DNA of 64,000 bases from Geosiphon pyriformis uo1 (lineage: Eukaryota; Fungi; Glomeromycota), in the NCBI GenBank assembly GCA_016748015.1, contig JAAOMT010000561.1:256026-320025 (forward strand). Direction: 5' to 3'. Position numbers and translations under genes: made by a program. Below are positions 19,401 through 52,605 of this stretch, in pieces (the stretch's first letter is position 1; every line of letters starts with the position of its first letter). The notes under the pieces are model-generated. The model was given only the letters and a program-made list of their open reading frames with translations, ran no database searches and was not told where the DNA came from.

Positions 19401-21050
19401 AATTTCAGTATAAAACTTTTCTATTTATGATGCAAAGAATAGGTTGATTAAATATTCAAAATTCTTATTAGTAAATTTTTATAACTAGTATTTTTAATAT
19501 CAATTCAATTTAAAACAAATAATTATTAAAAATTTTATTTGCAGATTTTACTATACATTGAAATTTTTTTTTAAAGTATAATTTTAGTTTTAAAATTACT
19601 TTGGCATTGATGTTATATAATTTTGACTGATAAAATATTTATTTTTATTAAAAAAATAATTTTTGAATTATAAAAAAATACTTAGCAAGTTTTCTTGTTT
19701 CTAGTTTTGGTGTTATTATCACATGCTTTTAATTCATATATTATAGTTATAAAATAAAAAATTAATATATAATATAAATTAAATTATATCATAAATAATC
19801 TCTATACCATGTAAAGCTTATTAATTTTATATTTGAAGATTTTAAAAATTTTTTTAATGAATTTGACCTTATTTTTTTGAAATTTTAATTTTTGAAAAAA
19901 CTTTTAAATTTTAAATTTTATCTGAAAAATTTATTAATTATAAGCTTAATAATTGTATTTTAATCCATAAATATTAATTTATAAAAATATGTATCAGATT
20001 ATTTTTTTATAATTTGATTTTATAAATATGTCCATAATACAAAATAGTAAATATAAAAGAATAGCAAATATAAAGTTATTTAATTTAAAATTAATTAATA
20101 TGATTATTCACAATAAAAAATAAAATATAAAGCTGAGTTTCATTGCTATTGTTACTTAATTTATGACACTTATTAATTTTTAATCTAGCAACAACAAAAA
20201 ATAATATTTTTGTTATAAGTTGAAAACAAGTTAAAAAAATAAATAAAATAAGGAACTTAAAAACTTAAAAAAAAAGCAAACTAAATATATAAGTAATTCA
20301 ATTAAAAAAGCAATTGTTATATATTAATTTATCAAAAAAAAATTGAATTAATTATTAATTTGTTAACTAATTGTTAATATATATATGAATATTACTTTTT
20401 TTCACTTTCCAATTAACTCACAAGTCTTTCTTTGAATAATTTGTTTTTTATTTTTATTTGTTAGAATTAGTTTAAAAAGAAAAAAACTTGTTGCATTGAA
20501 TTTTAAAATTGTTTATTGAGATATAAAGTTATTATTTTATTGATAATTACAAACTATTTTTATTTTTTTTATTTTTTTGAAATTAATATTTCAAAATTGT
20601 TTTTTTAATTAAATTACCTACAAATTCAATTTGCTTTTTATTTTAAGCGAATTCCAAATTAATTTTATTAATTTTTATTAATTTGTTACATTAACTCATA
20701 AAATTATAATTTATAAAAGCAAAACCTTTATTTTTTAAGCTAAATTTAATAATAATATTAAAATTTATGATAATTAATTTTACACAAAGATTTTATAAAT
20801 TTAATTTGAATATTATAAAATAGTATTAGGGTTTATAAAGTCTTATTTATATATTTAATAAAAAGAACTAAGGACCAATTAAGTGACAGAGTCAATATTT
20901 TATTCAACAAAAAATTCATTGATTAAATCAAAAATTTGGTTAAAAATATATAAAATATAAATGGCTAATACATAATTAAATATAATTAAGATAATTAAGT
21001 ATGGATGTCAACTAACAACATATTGAAAACAAAATCATCAAATTGGCTTT
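16500..21050. other. extremely AT-rich block (decayed repeat/TE), includes a ~51-bp x3 degenerate tandem at ~18015-18145
   Basis: Near absence of G/C. TGATTATAAATATTTATATT-like motif at 18021, 18072 and 18123. Confidence 0.5.
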
Positions 21051-23274: not shown

Positions 23275-24773
23275 ATGGCACCCCAACAACTATTTCACCC
23301 TTTATCTCACGATTTCGAGAGCTTATTGAATAGTCAGAATTTTTCTGATGTTAGAATTATTGTTGGCGAAGCGTCTAATACTAGAACTTTTCATGTTCAT
23401 TCTCAAATTTTAGCGGCAAGATCCTCGTATTTTGCTATAGCACTCTCTGGTGATTGGGTTAAAGAGAAAATAACACTATCGTCTTTTCTAAACCTAATAT
23501 ATCGCCAGATATTTTTGAGCTGATTCTTCGGTGAGTAATTTTGTTTGCTTAATAATTCTATTCATGACTATTTAATTTATTTTATTTTATCTAGATACAT
23601 TTATAGTGGTGAAATATCTCTTAATGAACACGGACCACTTACAATCTTAGAATTGTTTATTGCCGCTGACGAGCTTATTCTAGAAAAACTTATTGATCAC
23701 CTTGAAGATTATTTAATTGAACACCATGTAAAAGAGTTGGAAGAAAATTTTGCCACCTTTCATGAAACATCCTTCATCCATCATTCGTTCAAAAAGCTAC
23801 AAAAGTTCTGCATCGAAATAGCTGTCAACAATTCATCCGCAGTCTTTAACTCTCAAAATTTTACTTCCCTTAATAGAAATGTCCTTTGCTCAATTTTATC
23901 CTGGGATGACCGAAACATGGAAGAAAGTGAAATATGGGAAAAGATTATAGAATGGGGAGTCGCTAAATTAAGCAATGGGATTCAATTGAAAAAATTTCTT
24001 AATTGGACAGATGAAAACTTTGAAGCTTTTAAGGAATCTATTGAAGAACTTCTACCTTTAATCCGGTTCTTTAACATCTCTTCAGTTGACTTTTATTATA
24101 AAGTAAAGCTATTTGCGAGAATTTTACCTGGAACCTTATATGAAGATCTTTTACACCATTATCTAGTAACAGGGAGTCATCAAAAATCTGTTGACGCTCA
24201 TCCATTACGGTTTTCATGATCAAATTTTGATTCAAAGCTTCTCCAATCGCATAATATAAAGCAGCTTGATCATTGGATTCAAGGCAAAGACGAAAATACT
24301 CCTTTGGAAGATCAACTTGAAAATGAATTTAAATTACTACTTCGAGGCAGTCGAGACGGATTCTCACCAAATGATTTTCATCGGTTATGTGATAACAACG
24401 GAGCAAAAATTACTGTAATCAAAGTCAAAGGAACTGGTCAATTGATTGGCGGCTATGCCCCAAAATCTTGGCATTCTCGTGGCAATTGGATAGGTGGAGA
24501 GGAAAGTTTTATTTTTTCCTTTTGAGATGGCAAAGCTCAAAATGCTAAACTTAGCAAGCTTATTAGTGGACTTGGACTTTTTGGTTATAAAGAGTTCGGA
24601 CTCCAATTTGGCAGTTATAGTATTCGAACCTATAGTAATAATTTTCAATCTATTCCATGCAGTTGTATAAAGGAAACAAATTATGAGCACGTTATAATGC
24701 CAGGGTCAGAAAATACAGCGGTAGAATATTTTTTTTGATGAGTATGAAAGTTTTTCAAATTATCAAAAATTAA
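23275..24773 (+). pseudogene. BTB-BACK-TLDc paralogue, copy 3 (frameshifts and premature stop)
   Basis: 1-nt deletion at ~23461, intron 23531-23594, TGA at 24217-24219, and further frameshifts at ~24520 and ~24730-24750. Confidence 0.88.
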
Positions 24774-44919: not shown

Positions 44920-45516
44920 TAAATGCATGCTATGACATTTCGATTTCGAAACTAAACCCAGAAACATTAAGCGGTCCTACCTACACAAACCCAAACAAAC
45001 AGATTCGGCCATGGCTCTTATTAATCCTGTATTCTCCCTCTAAAAGGTGCGTAAATAGCCTCTGGTAACAACGGACGAATTTTTCGCCTTTCAAATATAT
45101 GAATGACCTTCTTTCGAAAAAAGCCCAACTGGCTGTTTCTCATTCAAAGCATAAGAAACGCAGGGTCCAGCAACTGGAAAAATTAGTCTCTACCACACGA
45201 CGAAAGATTCTGCATCTGCAGAATGAAATCCACAGGAAAGCGATCGTGTTTTCACTCGTTGTTTGAGGTGTCAAACATGACAAATTGTAGGTGAGAAAAG
45301 AATGTCTGGTAGGTACACTAATGTTTTCGTAAATATCTGATAGTCAAGGCCGAGGAGTTAAGAGTCGGTCTTGTCATCCAAAATGAGGTTTATGCATCTA
45401 AGGCTTGTGACTGGTTTAAATAAGATAAAAATCATTTGAAGGTCAGAAGTGTAAAACTGACAAAATTGCGGGGCTGTAATGGACAGGGATGAAATGGTCT
45501 TCTTCTTAGGTCATGG
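44920..45516 (+). mobile_element. tnpB: Fanzor (TnpB-like) pseudogene B
   Basis: Plus strand, mixed frames: ALINP (possible RuvC-I remnant, ~45014), YSPSK, GRIFRL, RRKILHLQNEIHRKAIVF, LFEVSNM, FRKYLIVKAEELRVGLVIQNEVYASKACDW, QNCGAVMDRD-NG..LLR (45462-45510). Collinear with copy A. Confidence 0.87.
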
Positions 45517-46487
45517 ACATACTCATGAAGACTTTGATCAAATTCTAAATTTTTTGATAATACATTAGAAAGTAAAGGATATCTTTTTCAAACTTCAATG
45601 TTGATATAACGGGAAAACCTGAATCTACGCAAATGCTTCGTTCATACAATTCTATTCTTCACCGATAATGCATTCCACAAAATGTTATATTGTTTAAATG
45701 TTAACATAAAAAAAAAAACTGAGTCTATTGCTTCAAATAATTATTTAATTTTAAAAATATTTACACCAATTTACAAATTTTTTGGTAGAATGAAATTTTT
45801 TGTTTTAAAGATACCTCCATTTATCAATTATTGAAGTACCGATTCAAAACACACATTTTTGGGCTTGCCAGGTCTAATAGGGGTTTAAGTTCCAGTCGTT
45901 TGAAATTGAGTGCTGAGCTGATATCATTGAGAAGTTCATAGGTTGGAAATCGAGAAAGGAGGTGTCGCTTTTGTCGCCGAAATGCTGTTTTGTTATCAGA
46001 GATATGCGTATTTTGGATGGATATATCTTTGGCGTTGATCTTTCCTTGCTTAAGTCAATGACGTTAGGTTGACGAGCATTACTAAGCAACTGGGCAGTAT
46101 TTTTTATTTATAAGCTTATTCAGCAAACATTTTCAGTGTCAAGAATCCTATCCTTTTTTTAAAAACAGCCAAAATAATAAATTAGGGCCTGAACCAAATT
46201 ACCGTCTATAACATTTTGCAAACTCCAAGTTTCTAACACAAAGAAAATTTTGCGCTTCAAAACTGTATTTTATCATTATGAGGAATGATTTAAATATTTA
46301 TCAAAAAAGGTAATAAAACTTTTCAAAGTTAAAAAGATATATTTGTGTGTGTATAATCCTTTTAAGCTACTTCTTTTTCATTACGAATGAATAGATGTAT
46401 AATAGGAAATTACATCTGGACAAATTATAAAATCATATAAAAATTAAATTAATAATTATCGGAGCAGCTCCTATTACTTAAAACCAA

Positions 46488-46669
46488 CTCGACTAGCTCA
46501 ACGGTTAGAGCACTAGGCTGGCACTTATGGCCTCAAGGTTCAATCCCAGCTTGTTATGACAAAAGTCATAATAACCTGTGAGTGTACATCAGATGACGTA
46601 CCCTCAAACCCTTGAGATACAATACCTAAGTCCACCTAGAGATGTGTGGTTCAAGTCCACACGTCGAGA
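46488..46669 (+). ncRNA. tRNA-like element with ~110-nt structured insertion in the anticodon loop (nominal anticodon GGC if the insert is a 37/38 intron)
   Basis: Acceptor CTCGAC/GTCGAG; D-arm GCTC-AACGGTTA-GAGC (A-box); anticodon stem CTAGG (46513-17)/CCTAG (46635-39); T-arm GTGTGG-TTCAAGT-CCACAC (B-box). No poly-T terminator immediately downstream. Confidence 0.65.
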
Positions 46670-48577
46670 TTAAATATTAAATTCTTGACTTCTTAAAAAC
46701 GTTTAGAAAACTCGTTACAAAAAATGATTGTCTTTGATTTCTTATCAAAGAGAAAATCTGTTATCTGAGGATCTCGATTCTTTCAGGGATCAGTTTTTTT
46801 TTTGAATTACCAGCAAGGTATTAGCTTTTGAAAGCTTTTAAAAGCTTTTAATTATTTTAACAAATTGGCATTTACTTTAAGGTATTAATCTGGTCTGGTT
46901 ACATTTGGGCACTGTAAATCTTGACTCTTGAGCCATATTATAAGACCAAATATGTATTCTGAATCTGAAACCAATCTTCCATCCATAGGTGACACTTAAG
47001 TCTAAAGCATTCTTAGATAGTAAAAAAATGAATAATAACGATATAAGTAAAAGTATAAAATATGTTTGAAGTATTTTGAACCAAATATTTTTTTTAGGGA
47101 TATATTTTATATGTCAATGTTTTTGAATGAAAATGCCCTATAAATTATTAAGGTATTTATTTCATCTCAATTAATTGTACTAATTTGAATGTTTATAATT
47201 GGTATTATCTTATTCTGTATTTGACATATTTTTTTAATTTTCCAAATGCTAGTAAGGTTATTTTGAATTATTAGTTAAACAGGTGTGTTTTAAATCAAGG
47301 TGTAATTTTCCAGTTGAGATGATTGATTCTTTGCAGAAATTCAGATCTTGAAATTTTTTAAATGATTTTAAATATTGAAAAATCAATATATATTTTTTAT
47401 ACATATTCATTAAATTGTTAGCTTTTTTTATAAATAGGTATTAAATAATTATAAAATTTTTAAAGTCACATGATAAAATTCATAAATATTTAGTTTTTAT
47501 TATTAAATAAAAGATGTTAATACGAGTAATCTTAACAAGTAAATATTTAATTATAATATATTTAAATATCAATGATAATTTTTATATTATCACTATCTAT
47601 GTAAAAACCCTAAAATTATTGAGAATTTTTTGGAAAATTAAAACAGGAGAAGCTGTAAATAAGAAGACACTTATACAATTAATTCACGGTTTTACCAAAG
47701 TAAAAAATTTCTATATATTTTCAATGGTGAGCCAAAAAAAATTAGTGTTCTCAATACCTAACTGCTGAAAGTTTATAATAACGAGTAAAATCTCACTGTT
47801 AAAATAATTCACGGTTGTAGCCAATTAGAAAAATCCCTCACCCATTTAAAAAAAAAACAATTCCTTTAAAAGCATACACCTAAATATATTATTGTTTATG
47901 CTGGTCTTCTTCAAATTCAAAAATTTAGAATATTTCGGGATCATTAAGGTCAACAATAATAAGTTATAAATTTAATTTAGCACGACAAAATTGGATTTCT
48001 AGTAAACTGATACGAGCTATTTGTTTTAACGCAATTCTGAAAGACTTGAAATTCGACCATTTCCTCACTGCATTCATAAGGTCATATTTATGCTCTAGGT
48101 TACATGAAAATCATGTTTTTTTATACGATAATGCTATATCACTCCCGGCAACAATGAGATATCTAATACTTGTCATACCATACTTATTTATTCTCCTCCA
48201 AGTAATTTTTAAAATTTCTTTTTCGTCATATGCAGACTGTTGAATCATCCGATCAAAAGCAATTCAATTTAACGTTGTGGAATCCCCTAAATCGATACCT
48301 TTTTTTTAAAGTGTCACCATCCTATTTTTAATTGGTAGCACTAAAATTACAAATAACCAATGGAGAATCATCACCCCAGTTTAATTCTGCAATGAAAAAT
48401 AATATTTAGTATTGATTTCTGCAAACATTGTTAGTGACCTTTTGAAATCTTCACCTATCACGCTTTATTCTTTCCTTTTATTTTTTCCATAGCGCTTGTT
48501 TTTTACCGAAGAGAGAATTCAAGTTAATTTAAGTTTTCACAGTCCCTTTTAACTTAATTACCCATCATTTTAATAAA

Positions 48578-50135
48578 ATGACTTCAAAATACCTATCAAT
48601 CTTATGCAATGATTTCGCACAAATGCTCGAAAATAGTGACGATTATAATGTGATCATCGAAGTTGGTGAAGCACCAGATATTAGATTCTTCAAAGCACAT
48701 AACAATATTTTGAAAGCGAGATGTCCATATTTCAGAGCGGCACTGTCCAGCAAATGGTCAAAATTTCATCCAGAAAATGGAATGTTTGTTTTCAGAAAAC
48801 CTAACGTGTCACCGGCTGTTTTTGCAATCATCCTAAAGTATTTTTTGGAAATCAATCTTATGAATATTTTTAAAAGAATTCAATCTGATTTCAAATTGAT
48901 TATTTAGATACATATATACCGGTTTACTTTCTCTTTCCGAGACTGCTAGCTACGACATAATGGATTTGCTGATAACAGCAGATGAGATGGTTTTAATGGA
49001 CCTGTTTGACCACGTCCAGGAATATTTGATTTCATTTCGATCAAACTGGATTTTAAACAATTTCACTTTGGTTTGCTCCACCGCATTTCAATACGATCGA
49101 TTCAACTTACTTCAAACTCATTGTCTCGATTTGCTATGCAAAGATGCTGCTCAATTTTTTCAGCCGGAATATATGTCCTTTGTCAATGAGACTTTTTTAA
49201 TTTCTGTGCTGCAGCGCCCGGACCTGGAAATGGACGAAATTGATTTATGGAAGTACTTGATTGATTGGGGAATTGCACAAACAAAGATACCTTACTCACG
49301 GGATGATTTATCGAAATGGTCTGATGATGAATTTTCAAAATTGAAATTAGCATTAGCAAATTGTATTCCATTAGTGAGATTTTCCAATATTTTACCCAAT
49401 CAATATCACCGACATATAAAAGCATTTCATCGTATTTTTCCTTGCTCCCTTCTCAATGAACTTCAACTCCATTTCTCACCCAATAAAAGAATCTCTTTTA
49501 TTGCTCCACCGCCACGAATGAACGGCATCAATTCTGTCCTACTAAAAACAAGACACTTGGCATTATTAGGACATTGGATTGGTAGAAAAGACTCGAACCC
49601 ATTTAAAGATGATAGCATAGTACACGATTTTCGAACCCTTCCATATCAGCTCAAACTCTTGTTACGAGGGACTCGAGACGGATTTTCTCCTTCGGCATTT
49701 CACAATAATTGTGATAATCAAGAAGCGACAGTGGTAGTGATGAAGATTCAAAATAATGGACATTTGATTGGTGGATACAATCCTTTTGGGTGGAATTCGG
49801 GAAATAAATGGGGGAGTGCACGGAATAGTTTCATATTTTCGCTTTCAGACGGAGTAAATTTACAGAATGCTATATTGTCTCGAGTTCAAGATCCAAAACG
49901 GGCGGTGTTATGCTCACAGGCTATCGGCGCATGTTTTGGAAGTGGAGATTTGGTAATGGGTGGCTACAGGGGGGATTTTGACATGGATTTGGCATGTTCC
50001 TCGAATCCTCAATCTTATGAACATCCGATCACCGATCTGGATCGGTTTTCTGTTGAGGAGTATGAAGTTTTCAAAGTGGTAAGGCGGTTGAAGACATGTC
50101 GAAAAGCAATCGATTTTGATCTAAGAGATGATTGA
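48578..50135 (+). CDS. BTB/POZ-BACK-TLDc domain protein, divergent paralogue (~495 aa; exons 48578-48837, 48908-50135)
   Basis: DYNVIIEVGE, FKAHNNILKARCPYF, ILK|YIYTG, LLRGTRDGF, LIGGYNP, SFIFSL, EEYEVFKV. The intron is at the same phase-2 position as in copies 1-3. Confidence 0.93.
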
Positions 50136-50771: not shown

Positions 50772-52605
50772 TTAATTTTGATTTAATTTATCTTGGATGC
50801 TCAATGTTTCATTCTTTCTGTCATTTATGCCTGTTCTGTAAAATATCAAGAGAGCAAAACCTGTGAGAAAATTAGTGACACCCATCCCCCCATATAGATA
50901 GGGTAACAGTGGATCTTTTGCTAATGGTACAAAAGGATAAACGAGGAGAGACCCAATTCCAGAGGAGAAAAGATAAATTGCCATGATAAAACCTTTCATT
51001 GAAGCTGGGGCTTGATTAAAACTGTACTCGAGACTCGTAATTGCCAGGAAAACTATTCAAAAATTAAAGAGTCAGAAAAAGAAATTATCCCAAAAGATTA
51101 AATATTAAAAAGAGTAATATTTACCTTCGGATGACGCGACGAGCGCGTATATAGGAAGTTGATACCAAACGCTGATTCGATTTGGTACCTGTATTCCGTT
51201 AATAGTACAAAGAGTATTCTGATAGCAAGGTGGAGTGTTATAGATAATCACTTGCAATACTGCGGCATAAGCCATTGCGGCTGTGATAAGCATAAAACCG
51301 ATAAACATTTGCATGATTGGGCTCGGTTCAATCTTGTGTTTTCGTAGAAATGGGAGAAAAATTTTATTCGCAAATGGAACCAATAAACATAAAGCAATCG
51401 GATCAAAAATATTCATCAAATCATTAGGAATAAATCCTGTTTCCATTGTAGCGGCTTGTGAAATTAGATTAGTTCCCATCTGAAAGTAAGCCATCCAATA
51501 AAATGATTGGAATAAAAGTACGCAACATGCGTGACAAGCTTGTCGCAATTCATCAATAAATTTATCGTCCCATGTGATCTTTTCGCTTGAATATTCATTT
51601 GCTGTTATATTTGATGGCTTCGTATCTTCCAATTTCCATCCATGACCGATTGCCATTCTAAAGACCAACATAATTTTCCAGAGTTCAAGTCCCTTTGTGT
51701 TAGTTTTTAATAGACATCCACGAACTCGCAAAAGTAGCACTGATCCAATCAAGAATACAACTGTAGCAACCAAAAATGCCAGCCAGAAAGAATGATATTT
51801 TTCGATGCTGGTGGTAAAAACCGGGGCTAGGTAGCCAATTGCAAGAATCATGTAAAACCAATGGTACATTGAGAGAATTGTGATTTTGGGATCTACGATT
51901 ACTTTTTCTCCGGTTGAAAGAGTTCTAAGAAAAGGTTTCTTGTGTGGATATTGTTCTCCAACGAGAGCATACAAAGTCGACTGTAGACCATCACCCAAGC
52001 CCAGAACAATCATACCGATTATCACACCGGGAAACGCAAATCCGGCCTTGATTGCTGCAGGCGTCGCAGTGACCGTTAATATGATCAGACCGAACACGAA
52101 AATAGCACTAAAGAGCATCATGGCGTTAAATTTGGTCATGTAACGGTCAGCGATCAAAGCGGCAATAATTGGGGTGGACCATGACCAGAATAGAAAGAAT
52201 GAGGTCAACGATGTAGCCATTTGTTGGCCTTTTCCTAGTGCACCGCTTTGTTGGCCAGGTTGATCAGGTACCGGAAATTGGATGTAATTTTGAAATAAAA
52301 ATGCTACACCAGAATACGCAAAAGCTTCACAGAAACAAAATGCGATATTGTACCACGCGGCTTTGGTGTAAAAAATTCAAATTATAAAATCGTGGTAGAA
52401 AAAGTTTTAAAATTTATAAAGACGAAAAAAGTATAATATATATGACAGCCCAAGTACCGGATGGTATATCATCTGACACTCTTTTCAAAGTATCTAATTC
52501 AATTTGTGTAGGATATTCCAATTTCTTTTCGTTTGTTTCAGACAGTTCAAAGGTTTCATCGTTGTACAGTTCTTTAGGCGGCGAAAGAAACTTTTCATTT
52601 TCCAT
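50772..52605 (-). CDS. PTR2: POT/PTR-family (MFS) transporter, PTR2-like (~554 aa; exons 52605-52458, 52360-51125, 51052-50772)
   Basis: Multiple hydrophobic helices; LKRVSDDIP, FQNYIQFP, ALGKGQQMATSL, IADRY, YHWFY, SQAATM, WYQLPIY, EYSFNQAPASMKG. Both introns are GT-AG and in frame. Confidence 0.88.

Follow-up and report, generated by a model that had tools for sequence, protein, structure and literature searches.

A single-copy tRNA-shaped gene of Geosiphon pyriformis with a predicted folded domain in the place of the anticodon loop

Genomic setting and tRNA body of the locus

The window analyzed here, a stretch of 64,000 nt on a contig of at least 320 kb in the genome assembly of Geosiphon pyriformis (128 Mb, 25% GC), possesses a tRNA-shaped gene on the forward strand at 46488-46669, sited in non-coding DNA. 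A BTB + TLDc gene lies 1.9 kb downstream of it. Further on, an ORF on the reverse strand (51105-52220) matches a GenBank protein of G. pyriformis with 100% identity. Two repeat families are found about 0.5-1.5 kb upstream, with their ends at 45494 and 45991, and the interval 46000-49000 is without any other genomic copy. All features are listed in Table 1. The repeat of about 120 nt at 45864-45991 has at least 20 dispersed copies with 74-82% identity and is distinct from the family at 45029-45494; it may be the end of the transposon family represented there. A near-perfect palindrome, GGAGCAGCTCC, is situated at 46461-46471, 17 nt 5' of the gene, in AT-rich surroundings. This palindrome was the source of the sole Rfam match of the region, which was at noise level. 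The closest PTR2 orthologue was found in Ambispora (60% identity) on a contig of 1.8 kb, and the synteny route to orthologues failed.

The candidate showed a GC content of 53%, with 50-56% in the exons and 42% in the insert, against 25-28% in the flanks. As the genome is AT-drifting, this roughly twofold GC content of exons and insert over the flanks argues for constraint. A 10.6-kb contig from the probable source run (depth about 87, no variants) also matched the DNA of the locus exactly, which is not independent support.

Table 1. Positions of the features of the tRNA-shaped gene and its surroundings in the window.
Feature	Position	Strand	Basis or remark
Repeat family, upstream of the gene	45029-45494
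Repeat of about 120 nt, upstream of the gene	45864-45991
tRNA 5' half	46488-46523	+	ARAGORN, MFE fold, direct reading
Acceptor 5' strand	46488-93	+
U8 A9	46494-95	+
A-box-like TAGCTCAACGG	46494-504	+	direct reading
D arm (4-bp stem)	46496-511	+
A26	46512	+
Anticodon-stem 5' strand (5 bp)	46513-17	+
C32 U33 G34 G35 C36 A37	46518-23	+	anticodon GGC = 46520-22
Anticodon-arm extension, 5' strand (U33 to insert base 7)	46519-46530	+	pairs with 46625-46634
Insert, 110 nt, canonical 37/38 intron position	46524-46633	+	ARAGORN; fold; GC 42%
P1 5' strand CTCAAGG	46532-46538	+	pairs with 46610-46616; base of predicted three-way junction
B-box / T-loop-like GGTTCAATCCC, junction strand of insert	46537-46547	+	direct reading
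Hairpin 1: 3 bp, C.C mismatch, 10 bp, loop AAAA	46547-46578	+	fold
Hairpin 2: 4 bp, U.C mismatch, 4 bp, small apical stem	46579-46606	+	fold
P1 3' strand CCTTGAG	46610-46616	+	followed by 8 unpaired nt, 46617-46624
tRNA 3' half	46634-46669	+	ARAGORN, MFE fold
A38	46634	+
Anticodon-stem 3' strand	46635-39	+
Variable loop, 4 nt	46640-43	+
T arm, 6-bp stem	46644-62	+
B box GGTTCAAGTCC, T arm	46648-58	+
Acceptor 3' strand	46663-68	+
Discriminator A	46669	+
Trailer, 124 nt, no T4 run, no significant structure (z=-0.1)	46670-46793	+
T10 run, first possible Pol III terminator	46794-46803	+	125 nt downstream of 3' end
BTB part of BTB/TLDc gene	48578-48907
TLDc part of BTB/TLDc gene	48960-50135
ORF	51105-52220	-

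The preliminary description of this DNA had proposed a tRNA-shaped RNA with a folded insert, to be checked by ARAGORN and Rfam. ARAGORN was positive when introns were allowed: it called a tRNA(GGC) over the full length of the gene with a 110-nt intron at 37/38, and this was the sole call in the whole window. At default settings it reported no tRNA in the window. Rfam was negative, as RF00005 gave no match at the gathering score nor at E<=10, a miss which is probably explained by the 110-nt insert. As a chance control, ARAGORN -i was run on block-shuffled copies of the window amounting to 38.4 Mb in total. Three matches were obtained, corresponding to about 10 per genome at the threshold of ARAGORN, so the call by itself is not a proof. 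All the three shuffled-sequence calls were AT-rich and had stems with wobble pairs or mismatches.

The MFE and centroid structures predicted by RNAfold both represent a cloverleaf with an extended anticodon arm, and both agree helix for helix with the structure drawn earlier, with the features at the positions claimed for them. The MFE of the whole RNA was -67.3 kcal/mol, with a z of -6.0, or -7.1 in a second set of shuffles. The whole structure has 61 predicted pairs with a single G.U. The four tRNA stems together have 21 Watson-Crick pairs, zero G.U and zero mismatches. By direct reading, the conserved bases U8, A14, G18 G19, A21, U33, T54-T55-C56, A58 and C61 were found to be present, and the gene also possesses C1:G72 and A73.

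The acceptor/T stack is composed of 6+6 bp. Only 6 bases precede U8, and the canonical 7-bp acceptor, 2-nt linker and 5-bp T stem are not found. The 7+5 drawing of ARAGORN requires a U.C mismatch and a 1-nt linker, while the tertiary partners A9/U12:A23, G45/G10:C25 and A15/U48 were found by direct reading to fit in the 6+6 register. On the basis of this fit the 6+6 arrangement is favoured over that of ARAGORN, in line with the stems as they were first described. Modelled in this way, the RNA would adopt an authentic tRNA L-shape with an unusual combination of 6-bp acceptor and 6-bp T stem.

The insert and its splicing geometry

Both ends of the insert pair with the anticodon loop. They form an extension of the anticodon arm of 10 bp with 1-nt bulges at C32, C36 and insert U5, and both nominal cut sites are located within this extension helix. 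According to the predicted fold, the anticodon loop would be zipped shut by the insert and the arm lengthened by about 10 bp, with a three-way junction at its end. The helix P1 and the two hairpins, which had been proposed from the sequence, were reproduced in the RNAfold prediction, and the three-way junction they form is likewise a thermodynamic prediction. When folded alone, the insert showed a z of -4.7. In a sliding control, 2 of 422 other 110-nt segments of the window (0.5%) reached a z of -4.5. These two segments are positioned at about 23401-23510 (z=-4.8) and about 20551-20660 (z=-4.6).

In local comparisons, the insert was most similar to tRNA-Ala(TGC) and tRNA-Ser, on the 3' side of their T arms (p about 0.025), hinting that a part of it may be derived from tRNA sequence. 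The families of Rfam 15, including ribozymes and snoRNAs, gave nothing relevant in 46300-46850 at E<=10. A known ribozyme in the three-way junction was rejected, as there was no Rfam match at this E value and the junction strands are unlike the hammerhead core.

The position 37/38 of the insert is the same as that of the intron in TSEN-spliced eukaryotic pre-tRNAs, where pairing between anticodon and intron is normal. In these substrates the proximal (A-I) pair, formed by base 32 with intron base -3, closes a 3-nt bulge at the 3' cut site and is both conserved and critical (PMC10485636; PMC6614914). Over-tight helices between anticodon and intron lower splicing in vivo (PMC6614914). Eukaryotic TSEN picks its sites largely by the distance from the tRNA body, and relaxed motifs are tolerated (PMC10485636).

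In the candidate the proximal pair is absent, as C32 faces U(-3) with a pairing probability of 0. Insert bases -2 and -1 and base 38 are paired with P>0.98, and both predicted cut sites are buried (unpaired P <0.02). In the predicted fold the 3' strand is paired over 15 bases in a row, starting in the insert and passing A38 to reach the anticodon stem, and forcing the 3' bulge open costs 6.6 kcal/mol, or 8.6 kcal/mol for both sites. The partition-function fold of the genuine pre-tRNA-Tyr also misses the canonical geometry; since a genuine substrate is misfolded by the same calculation, the splicing argument leans on the missing pair more than on the energies. As modelled, the RNA would be without the geometry required by the eukaryotic tRNA splicing endonuclease and would be a poor splicing substrate.

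RtcB (PF01139) was not found in a six-frame search of the 128-Mb assembly, although absence from an assembly is no proof, and a Trl1-type ligase (kinase) domain is present. A metazoan-style intron circle is therefore not expected. The circular intron, or tricRNA, that the preliminary description had offered is considered unlikely on account of these two results together with the non-canonical geometry of the cut sites. Ro60/TROVE (PF05731) was also not found in the genome, and a Y-RNA-like or YrlA-type Ro60 partner was rejected for this reason.

Gene identity, copy number and transcription signals

The third acceptor pair of the candidate is C:G, and G3:U70 is absent. This had been pointed out earlier, along with C1:G72 and A73, and direct reading agreed on all of these. 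To place the anticodon among the alanine genes of the genome, a covariance model was built from two Ala(UGC) genes; it recovered two Ala(AGC) genes and one Ala(CGC) gene, all starting with GGGG. The genome thus contains Ala(AGC) x2, Ala(CGC) x1 and Ala(UGC) x2, all of which carry G3:U70, and alanine decoding is fully covered without the candidate. Its anticodon GGC is outside the eukaryotic alanine set AGC/CGC/UGC. The early remark that GGC is rare for eukaryotic alanine is borne out by the literature, as eukaryotes generally lack alanine anticodons of the GNN type (PMC12530127). An alanine tRNA was ruled out because G3:U70 is missing and the genome has normal genes for all three eukaryotic alanine anticodons. 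When compared with 55 distinct sampled tRNA genes, the candidate body was close to none, and the best was a modest likeness to tRNA-Arg(UCU).

A BLAST search of 271 nt against the 128-Mb genome, a genome-wide search with each exon as a pattern allowing up to 3 mismatches, and a genome-wide search with a covariance model of the whole structure (229.6 bits) all retrieved the locus itself alone. The BLASTN search for homologues had been suggested at the start; in the genome of the fungus itself it matched nothing other than the locus. With a unique locus, a SINE or MITE is ruled out, and neither a recent parent gene nor a spliced retrocopy is present. No match was obtained when GTDB genomes, viral contigs and JGI metagenomes were scanned with exact 21-23-mers, and a foreign origin (bacterial, archaeal or viral) was set aside on these scans, which are weak tests.

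The tRNA-Tyr genes of G. pyriformis comprise two nuclear loci and copies on the small contig C202. Three distinct genes (contigs C418, C783 and C202) all have C32/G(-3) and introns of 12-13 nt. About 110 first-look tRNA gene candidates were obtained in the genome with the tRNA-Ala model. With so few tRNA-Tyr loci and about 110 first-look candidates, a single copy is not odd for the candidate. For a genome of 128 Mb the number of tRNA gene copies seems low, and among the 35 anticodon classes sampled an intron was found in tRNA-Tyr only.

Some side observations were made on these genes. Contig C202 (10.5 kb; loci L010-L012, L022, L025 and L075) contains a dense tRNA cluster with Arg-TCT, Tyr (13-nt intron), Leu-TAA, Ile-TAT, Phe, Arg-TCG, Lys-CTT, Pro-AGG and more. 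The same four-gene block is present at both ends of the contig, and its flanks give the impression of being less AT-rich than fungal intergenic DNA. C202 may belong to another organism as an array of tRNA genes, or it may represent a circular or tandem unit. At L003/L004 (C418:91245-92181), a tRNA-Tyr gene is flanked by two inverted tRNA-Asn(GTT) genes. ARAGORN labels this tRNA-Tyr as 'Asn i(36,12)', and placing the intron after base 37 gives Tyr(GTA) with a 12-nt intron.

The A-box-like motif and the B box of the T arm start 154 nt apart, insert included. The second B-box-like motif that had been noticed inside the insert was confirmed as GGTTCAATCCC, and it starts 43 nt downstream of where the A-box-like motif begins. 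Its chance expectation is about 5e-4 per strand, an estimate of our own from a post hoc look. It had also been stated that there is no poly-T terminator, and indeed the 124 nt downstream of the gene have no T4 run, the first being the T10 run. Most tRNA genes of the genome have a T4 within 0-48 nt of their 3' end, and the trailer of the candidate is thus atypical. The T4-free interval around the gene extends over 415 nt (46379-46793) and is closed by the T10 run, whereas the 99th percentile of such intervals in the window is 259 nt and T4 runs are spaced about 51 nt apart per strand in the genome. Random 306-nt segments were without TTTT in 2.1% of cases, and GC-matched ones in 3.7%. Read from the sequence, the T4-free interval ending in T10 and the intronic B-box-like motif are hints of Pol III transcription.

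A dicistronic tRNA-snoRNA or another downstream RNA was rejected, as the trailer is unstructured and without Rfam match, and neither a C/D box arrangement nor a terminal stem was convincing on inspection by eye. Some copies of tRNA-Asn(GTT) (L003, L005) have no T4 run within 60 nt and show a palindromic sequence instead. This palindrome may mark a tRNA-linked element.

Interpretation and relation to known systems

The candidate is a nuclear gene, present once in the genome and laid out like a tRNA gene transcribed by Pol III. It is not an ordinary tRNA, and on this point the preliminary description holds, because the alanine pair is missing, the anticodon belongs to a rare class, the stems are 6+6, no terminator is nearby, and there is neither a proximal pair nor a 3-nt bulge. 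The perfect pairing, the intact tertiary set, the GC content of twice the flanks, the missing parent gene and the T4-free interval make it somewhat more probable than not that the tRNA fold is under selection or was so until very recently.

Our best reading, which is a tentative one, is a putative unspliced tRNA-scaffolded RNA. It is preferred over a spliced tRNA with a free intron because decoding is implausible and the splicing geometry is wrong. In the model, Pol III would transcribe the gene from the A box and the B box, where the intronic B-box-like motif may restore the normal A-B spacing, and transcription would continue as far as the T10 run, 125 nt beyond the gene. The 12-bp acceptor/T stack would guide RNase P and RNase Z in trimming the ends. 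An RNA of about 182 nt would result and persist mostly unspliced, and its tRNA body would act not as a decoder but as a scaffold for the folded domain, aiding processing and stability. Some points count against the unspliced scaffold. The trailer of 124 nt is atypical, and the burial of the cut sites is predicted by a calculation that misses the canonical geometry of the genuine pre-tRNA-Tyr. The insert at 37/38 leaves a perfect 7-nt loop with U33 and A37, which suggests an origin as a spliced tRNA, perhaps still used as such. Moreover, where a large genome contains an orphan tRNA-like sequence, it is usually a pseudogene.

In its boldest form the model would describe a new kind of eukaryotic tRNA-scaffolded RNA, a proposal that we regard as doubtful though possible. 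Such an RNA would have a true L-shape with a 6+6 stack, and the tRNA machinery would both produce it and trim it. A three-way-junction domain, with a junction strand resembling a T-loop, would permanently take the place of its anticodon loop. Selection for a non-decoding role would maintain it in Geosiphon and perhaps in further Glomeromycotina.

There is a real chance, which we place somewhat short of likely, that the locus is a non-functional relic, that is, an orphan tRNA gene which lost its role and whose parent family has since been lost or diverged. The proposed causes are a changed anticodon, the loss of 1 nt from the 5' strand of the acceptor stem, and growth of the intron by hairpin-rich DNA or by a tRNA fragment. 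Decay of this kind would account for the combined oddities (a 6+6 stem arrangement, a GGC anticodon lacking alanine identity, a missing proximal pair and no terminator close by), and a rearrangement would give the weak resemblance of the insert to a tRNA T arm. The blank exact-pattern scans, the equally strong folding of two other segments of the window and the chance calls expected at the threshold of ARAGORN are in agreement with it. Decay is harder to reconcile with 61 predicted pairs that include a single G.U, tRNA stems without mismatch and tertiary-contact bases that are all intact. The GC content of about twice the flanks also speaks against it. No parent was found within 3 mismatches, and neutral divergence to that extent would be expected to have disrupted several pairs. 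Finally, the long T4-free interval is unexpected in dead DNA, given the spacing of T4 runs in this genome.

A genuine intron-containing gene is a less likely explanation. Here the Sen endonuclease and the Trl1 ligase would produce a 72-nt tRNA(GGC) and a linear structured free intron of 110 nt. By analogy with yeast fitRNAs and Drosophila tric31905, the intron itself may be the useful product. The placement of the insert exactly at 37/38, the 7-nt loop with U33 and a purine at 37 that it leaves, the normality of anticodon-intron pairing in pre-tRNAs and the Trl1-type ligase domain of the assembly all suit such a gene. Site choice by distance with tolerance of relaxed motifs (PMC10485636) adds to this, and precedents are provided by the 113-nt intron of Drosophila tRNA-Tyr (PMC4536317) and by the free introns of yeast (bioRxiv 10.1101/2025.11.19.689297). 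However, C32 is opposite U(-3), the predicted fold has no 3-nt bulge at the 3' cut site, and over-stable helices lower splicing (PMC6614914). Without G3:U70, the spliced product would duplicate the decoding by Ala(AGC), or misread Ala codons if charged by another synthetase. RtcB was not found, so a circle like that of tricRNAs is not expected, and neither exon has a second copy that could be a spliced retrocopy.

A tRNA-derived mobile element (SINE/MITE head), or a part or guide RNA of the neighbouring Fanzor-bearing transposon, is very improbable. Fanzor/TnpB fossils and the repeat of about 120 nt do lie 0.5-1.5 kb upstream, and the ends of the insert resemble imperfect inverted repeats. Nevertheless, the tRNA-mimicking mobile element of the preliminary description is contradicted by the single copy in the 128-Mb genome, on which BLAST, the patterns with up to 3 mismatches and the covariance model agree. 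The part or guide RNA was rejected as the repeat families stop at 45494 and 45991, before the copy-free stretch in which the gene lies. A dedicated retroelement primer was also rejected, as the complement of the 3' end + CCA, resembling a primer-binding site, was found nowhere else in the genome. Chance resemblance or an assembly artefact, for which one could cite the about 3 false ARAGORN -i calls per 38 Mb of shuffled sequence and the fact that the only DNA run with the locus is the probable source run, is hardly credible beside the 21 perfect pairs, the complete set of conserved bases and the 53% GC of the candidate as against the AT-rich, wobble-paired or mismatched false calls, its fold z of -6 to -7 and the exact match in a contig of depth about 87.

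Should the RNA be produced and remain unspliced, it would represent a natural eukaryotic tRNA body that scaffolds another folded domain, as well as a natural 6+6 variant of the 12-bp acceptor/T stack. To our knowledge, designs with the tRNA body as a scaffold are known mainly from engineering and from a few bacterial and viral mimics. If it is spliced, the fungal endonuclease would accept a substrate without the conserved proximal pair, and fungi would gain a long structured free intron comparable to tric31905 of flies. If it is a relic, the case would be ordinary, and mainly a warning that intron-tolerant tRNA finders may report such loci as 'tRNA-Ala(GGC)'.

Several known systems share features with the candidate. 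YrlA has a circularly permuted tRNA fold and acts together with Ro60, and mascRNA is cut from a Pol II transcript. The candidate would be similar to both in having a tRNA-like fold outside decoding, and by analogy its ends may be defined by tRNA processing enzymes; we know of no mimic of the YrlA/mascRNA type in which a three-way-junction domain replaces the anticodon loop. Pseudogenes of tRNAs and SINEs normally have mismatched stems, and SINEs are present in many copies. The odd anticodon, the missing identity elements and the atypical terminator are shared with tRNA pseudogenes and SINE heads, but unlike these the candidate is unique and perfectly paired. With the tRNA-Tyr genes of G. pyriformis itself (C418, C783, C202) it shares the insert at 37/38, C1:G72, A73 and the A and B boxes. 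Those genes have introns of 12-13 nt, C32/G(-3), 7+5 stems and T4-T5 runs 3-13 nt downstream, and the candidate differs in each of these features.

The free tRNA introns of yeast (fitRNAs) are functional as RNAs (bioRxiv 10.1101/2025.11.19.689297). They resemble the candidate in the fungal setting of Trl1-type splicing, where excised linear introns can act as RNAs. They are short and come from ordinary decoding tRNAs, whereas splicing of the candidate is doubtful, and no complementarity to a target was found for it. The tRNA:Tyr gene CR31905 of Drosophila possesses a structured intron of 113 nt with covariation across species and forms RtcB-dependent circles, tric31905 (Lu et al. 2015, PMC4536317). 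The intron-containing tRNA genes of flies keep a C-G proximal pair with a 3-nt bulge (PMC6614914). CR31905 is a true tRNA-Tyr(GUA), while the candidate has the anticodon GGC and no proximal pair, and RtcB was not found in its genome. Like CR31905, the candidate is a nuclear tRNA-type gene with a strongly structured insert of about 110 nt at 37/38, with C1:G72 and with A73. It belongs with the long-intron or tRNA-like genes, as a variant.
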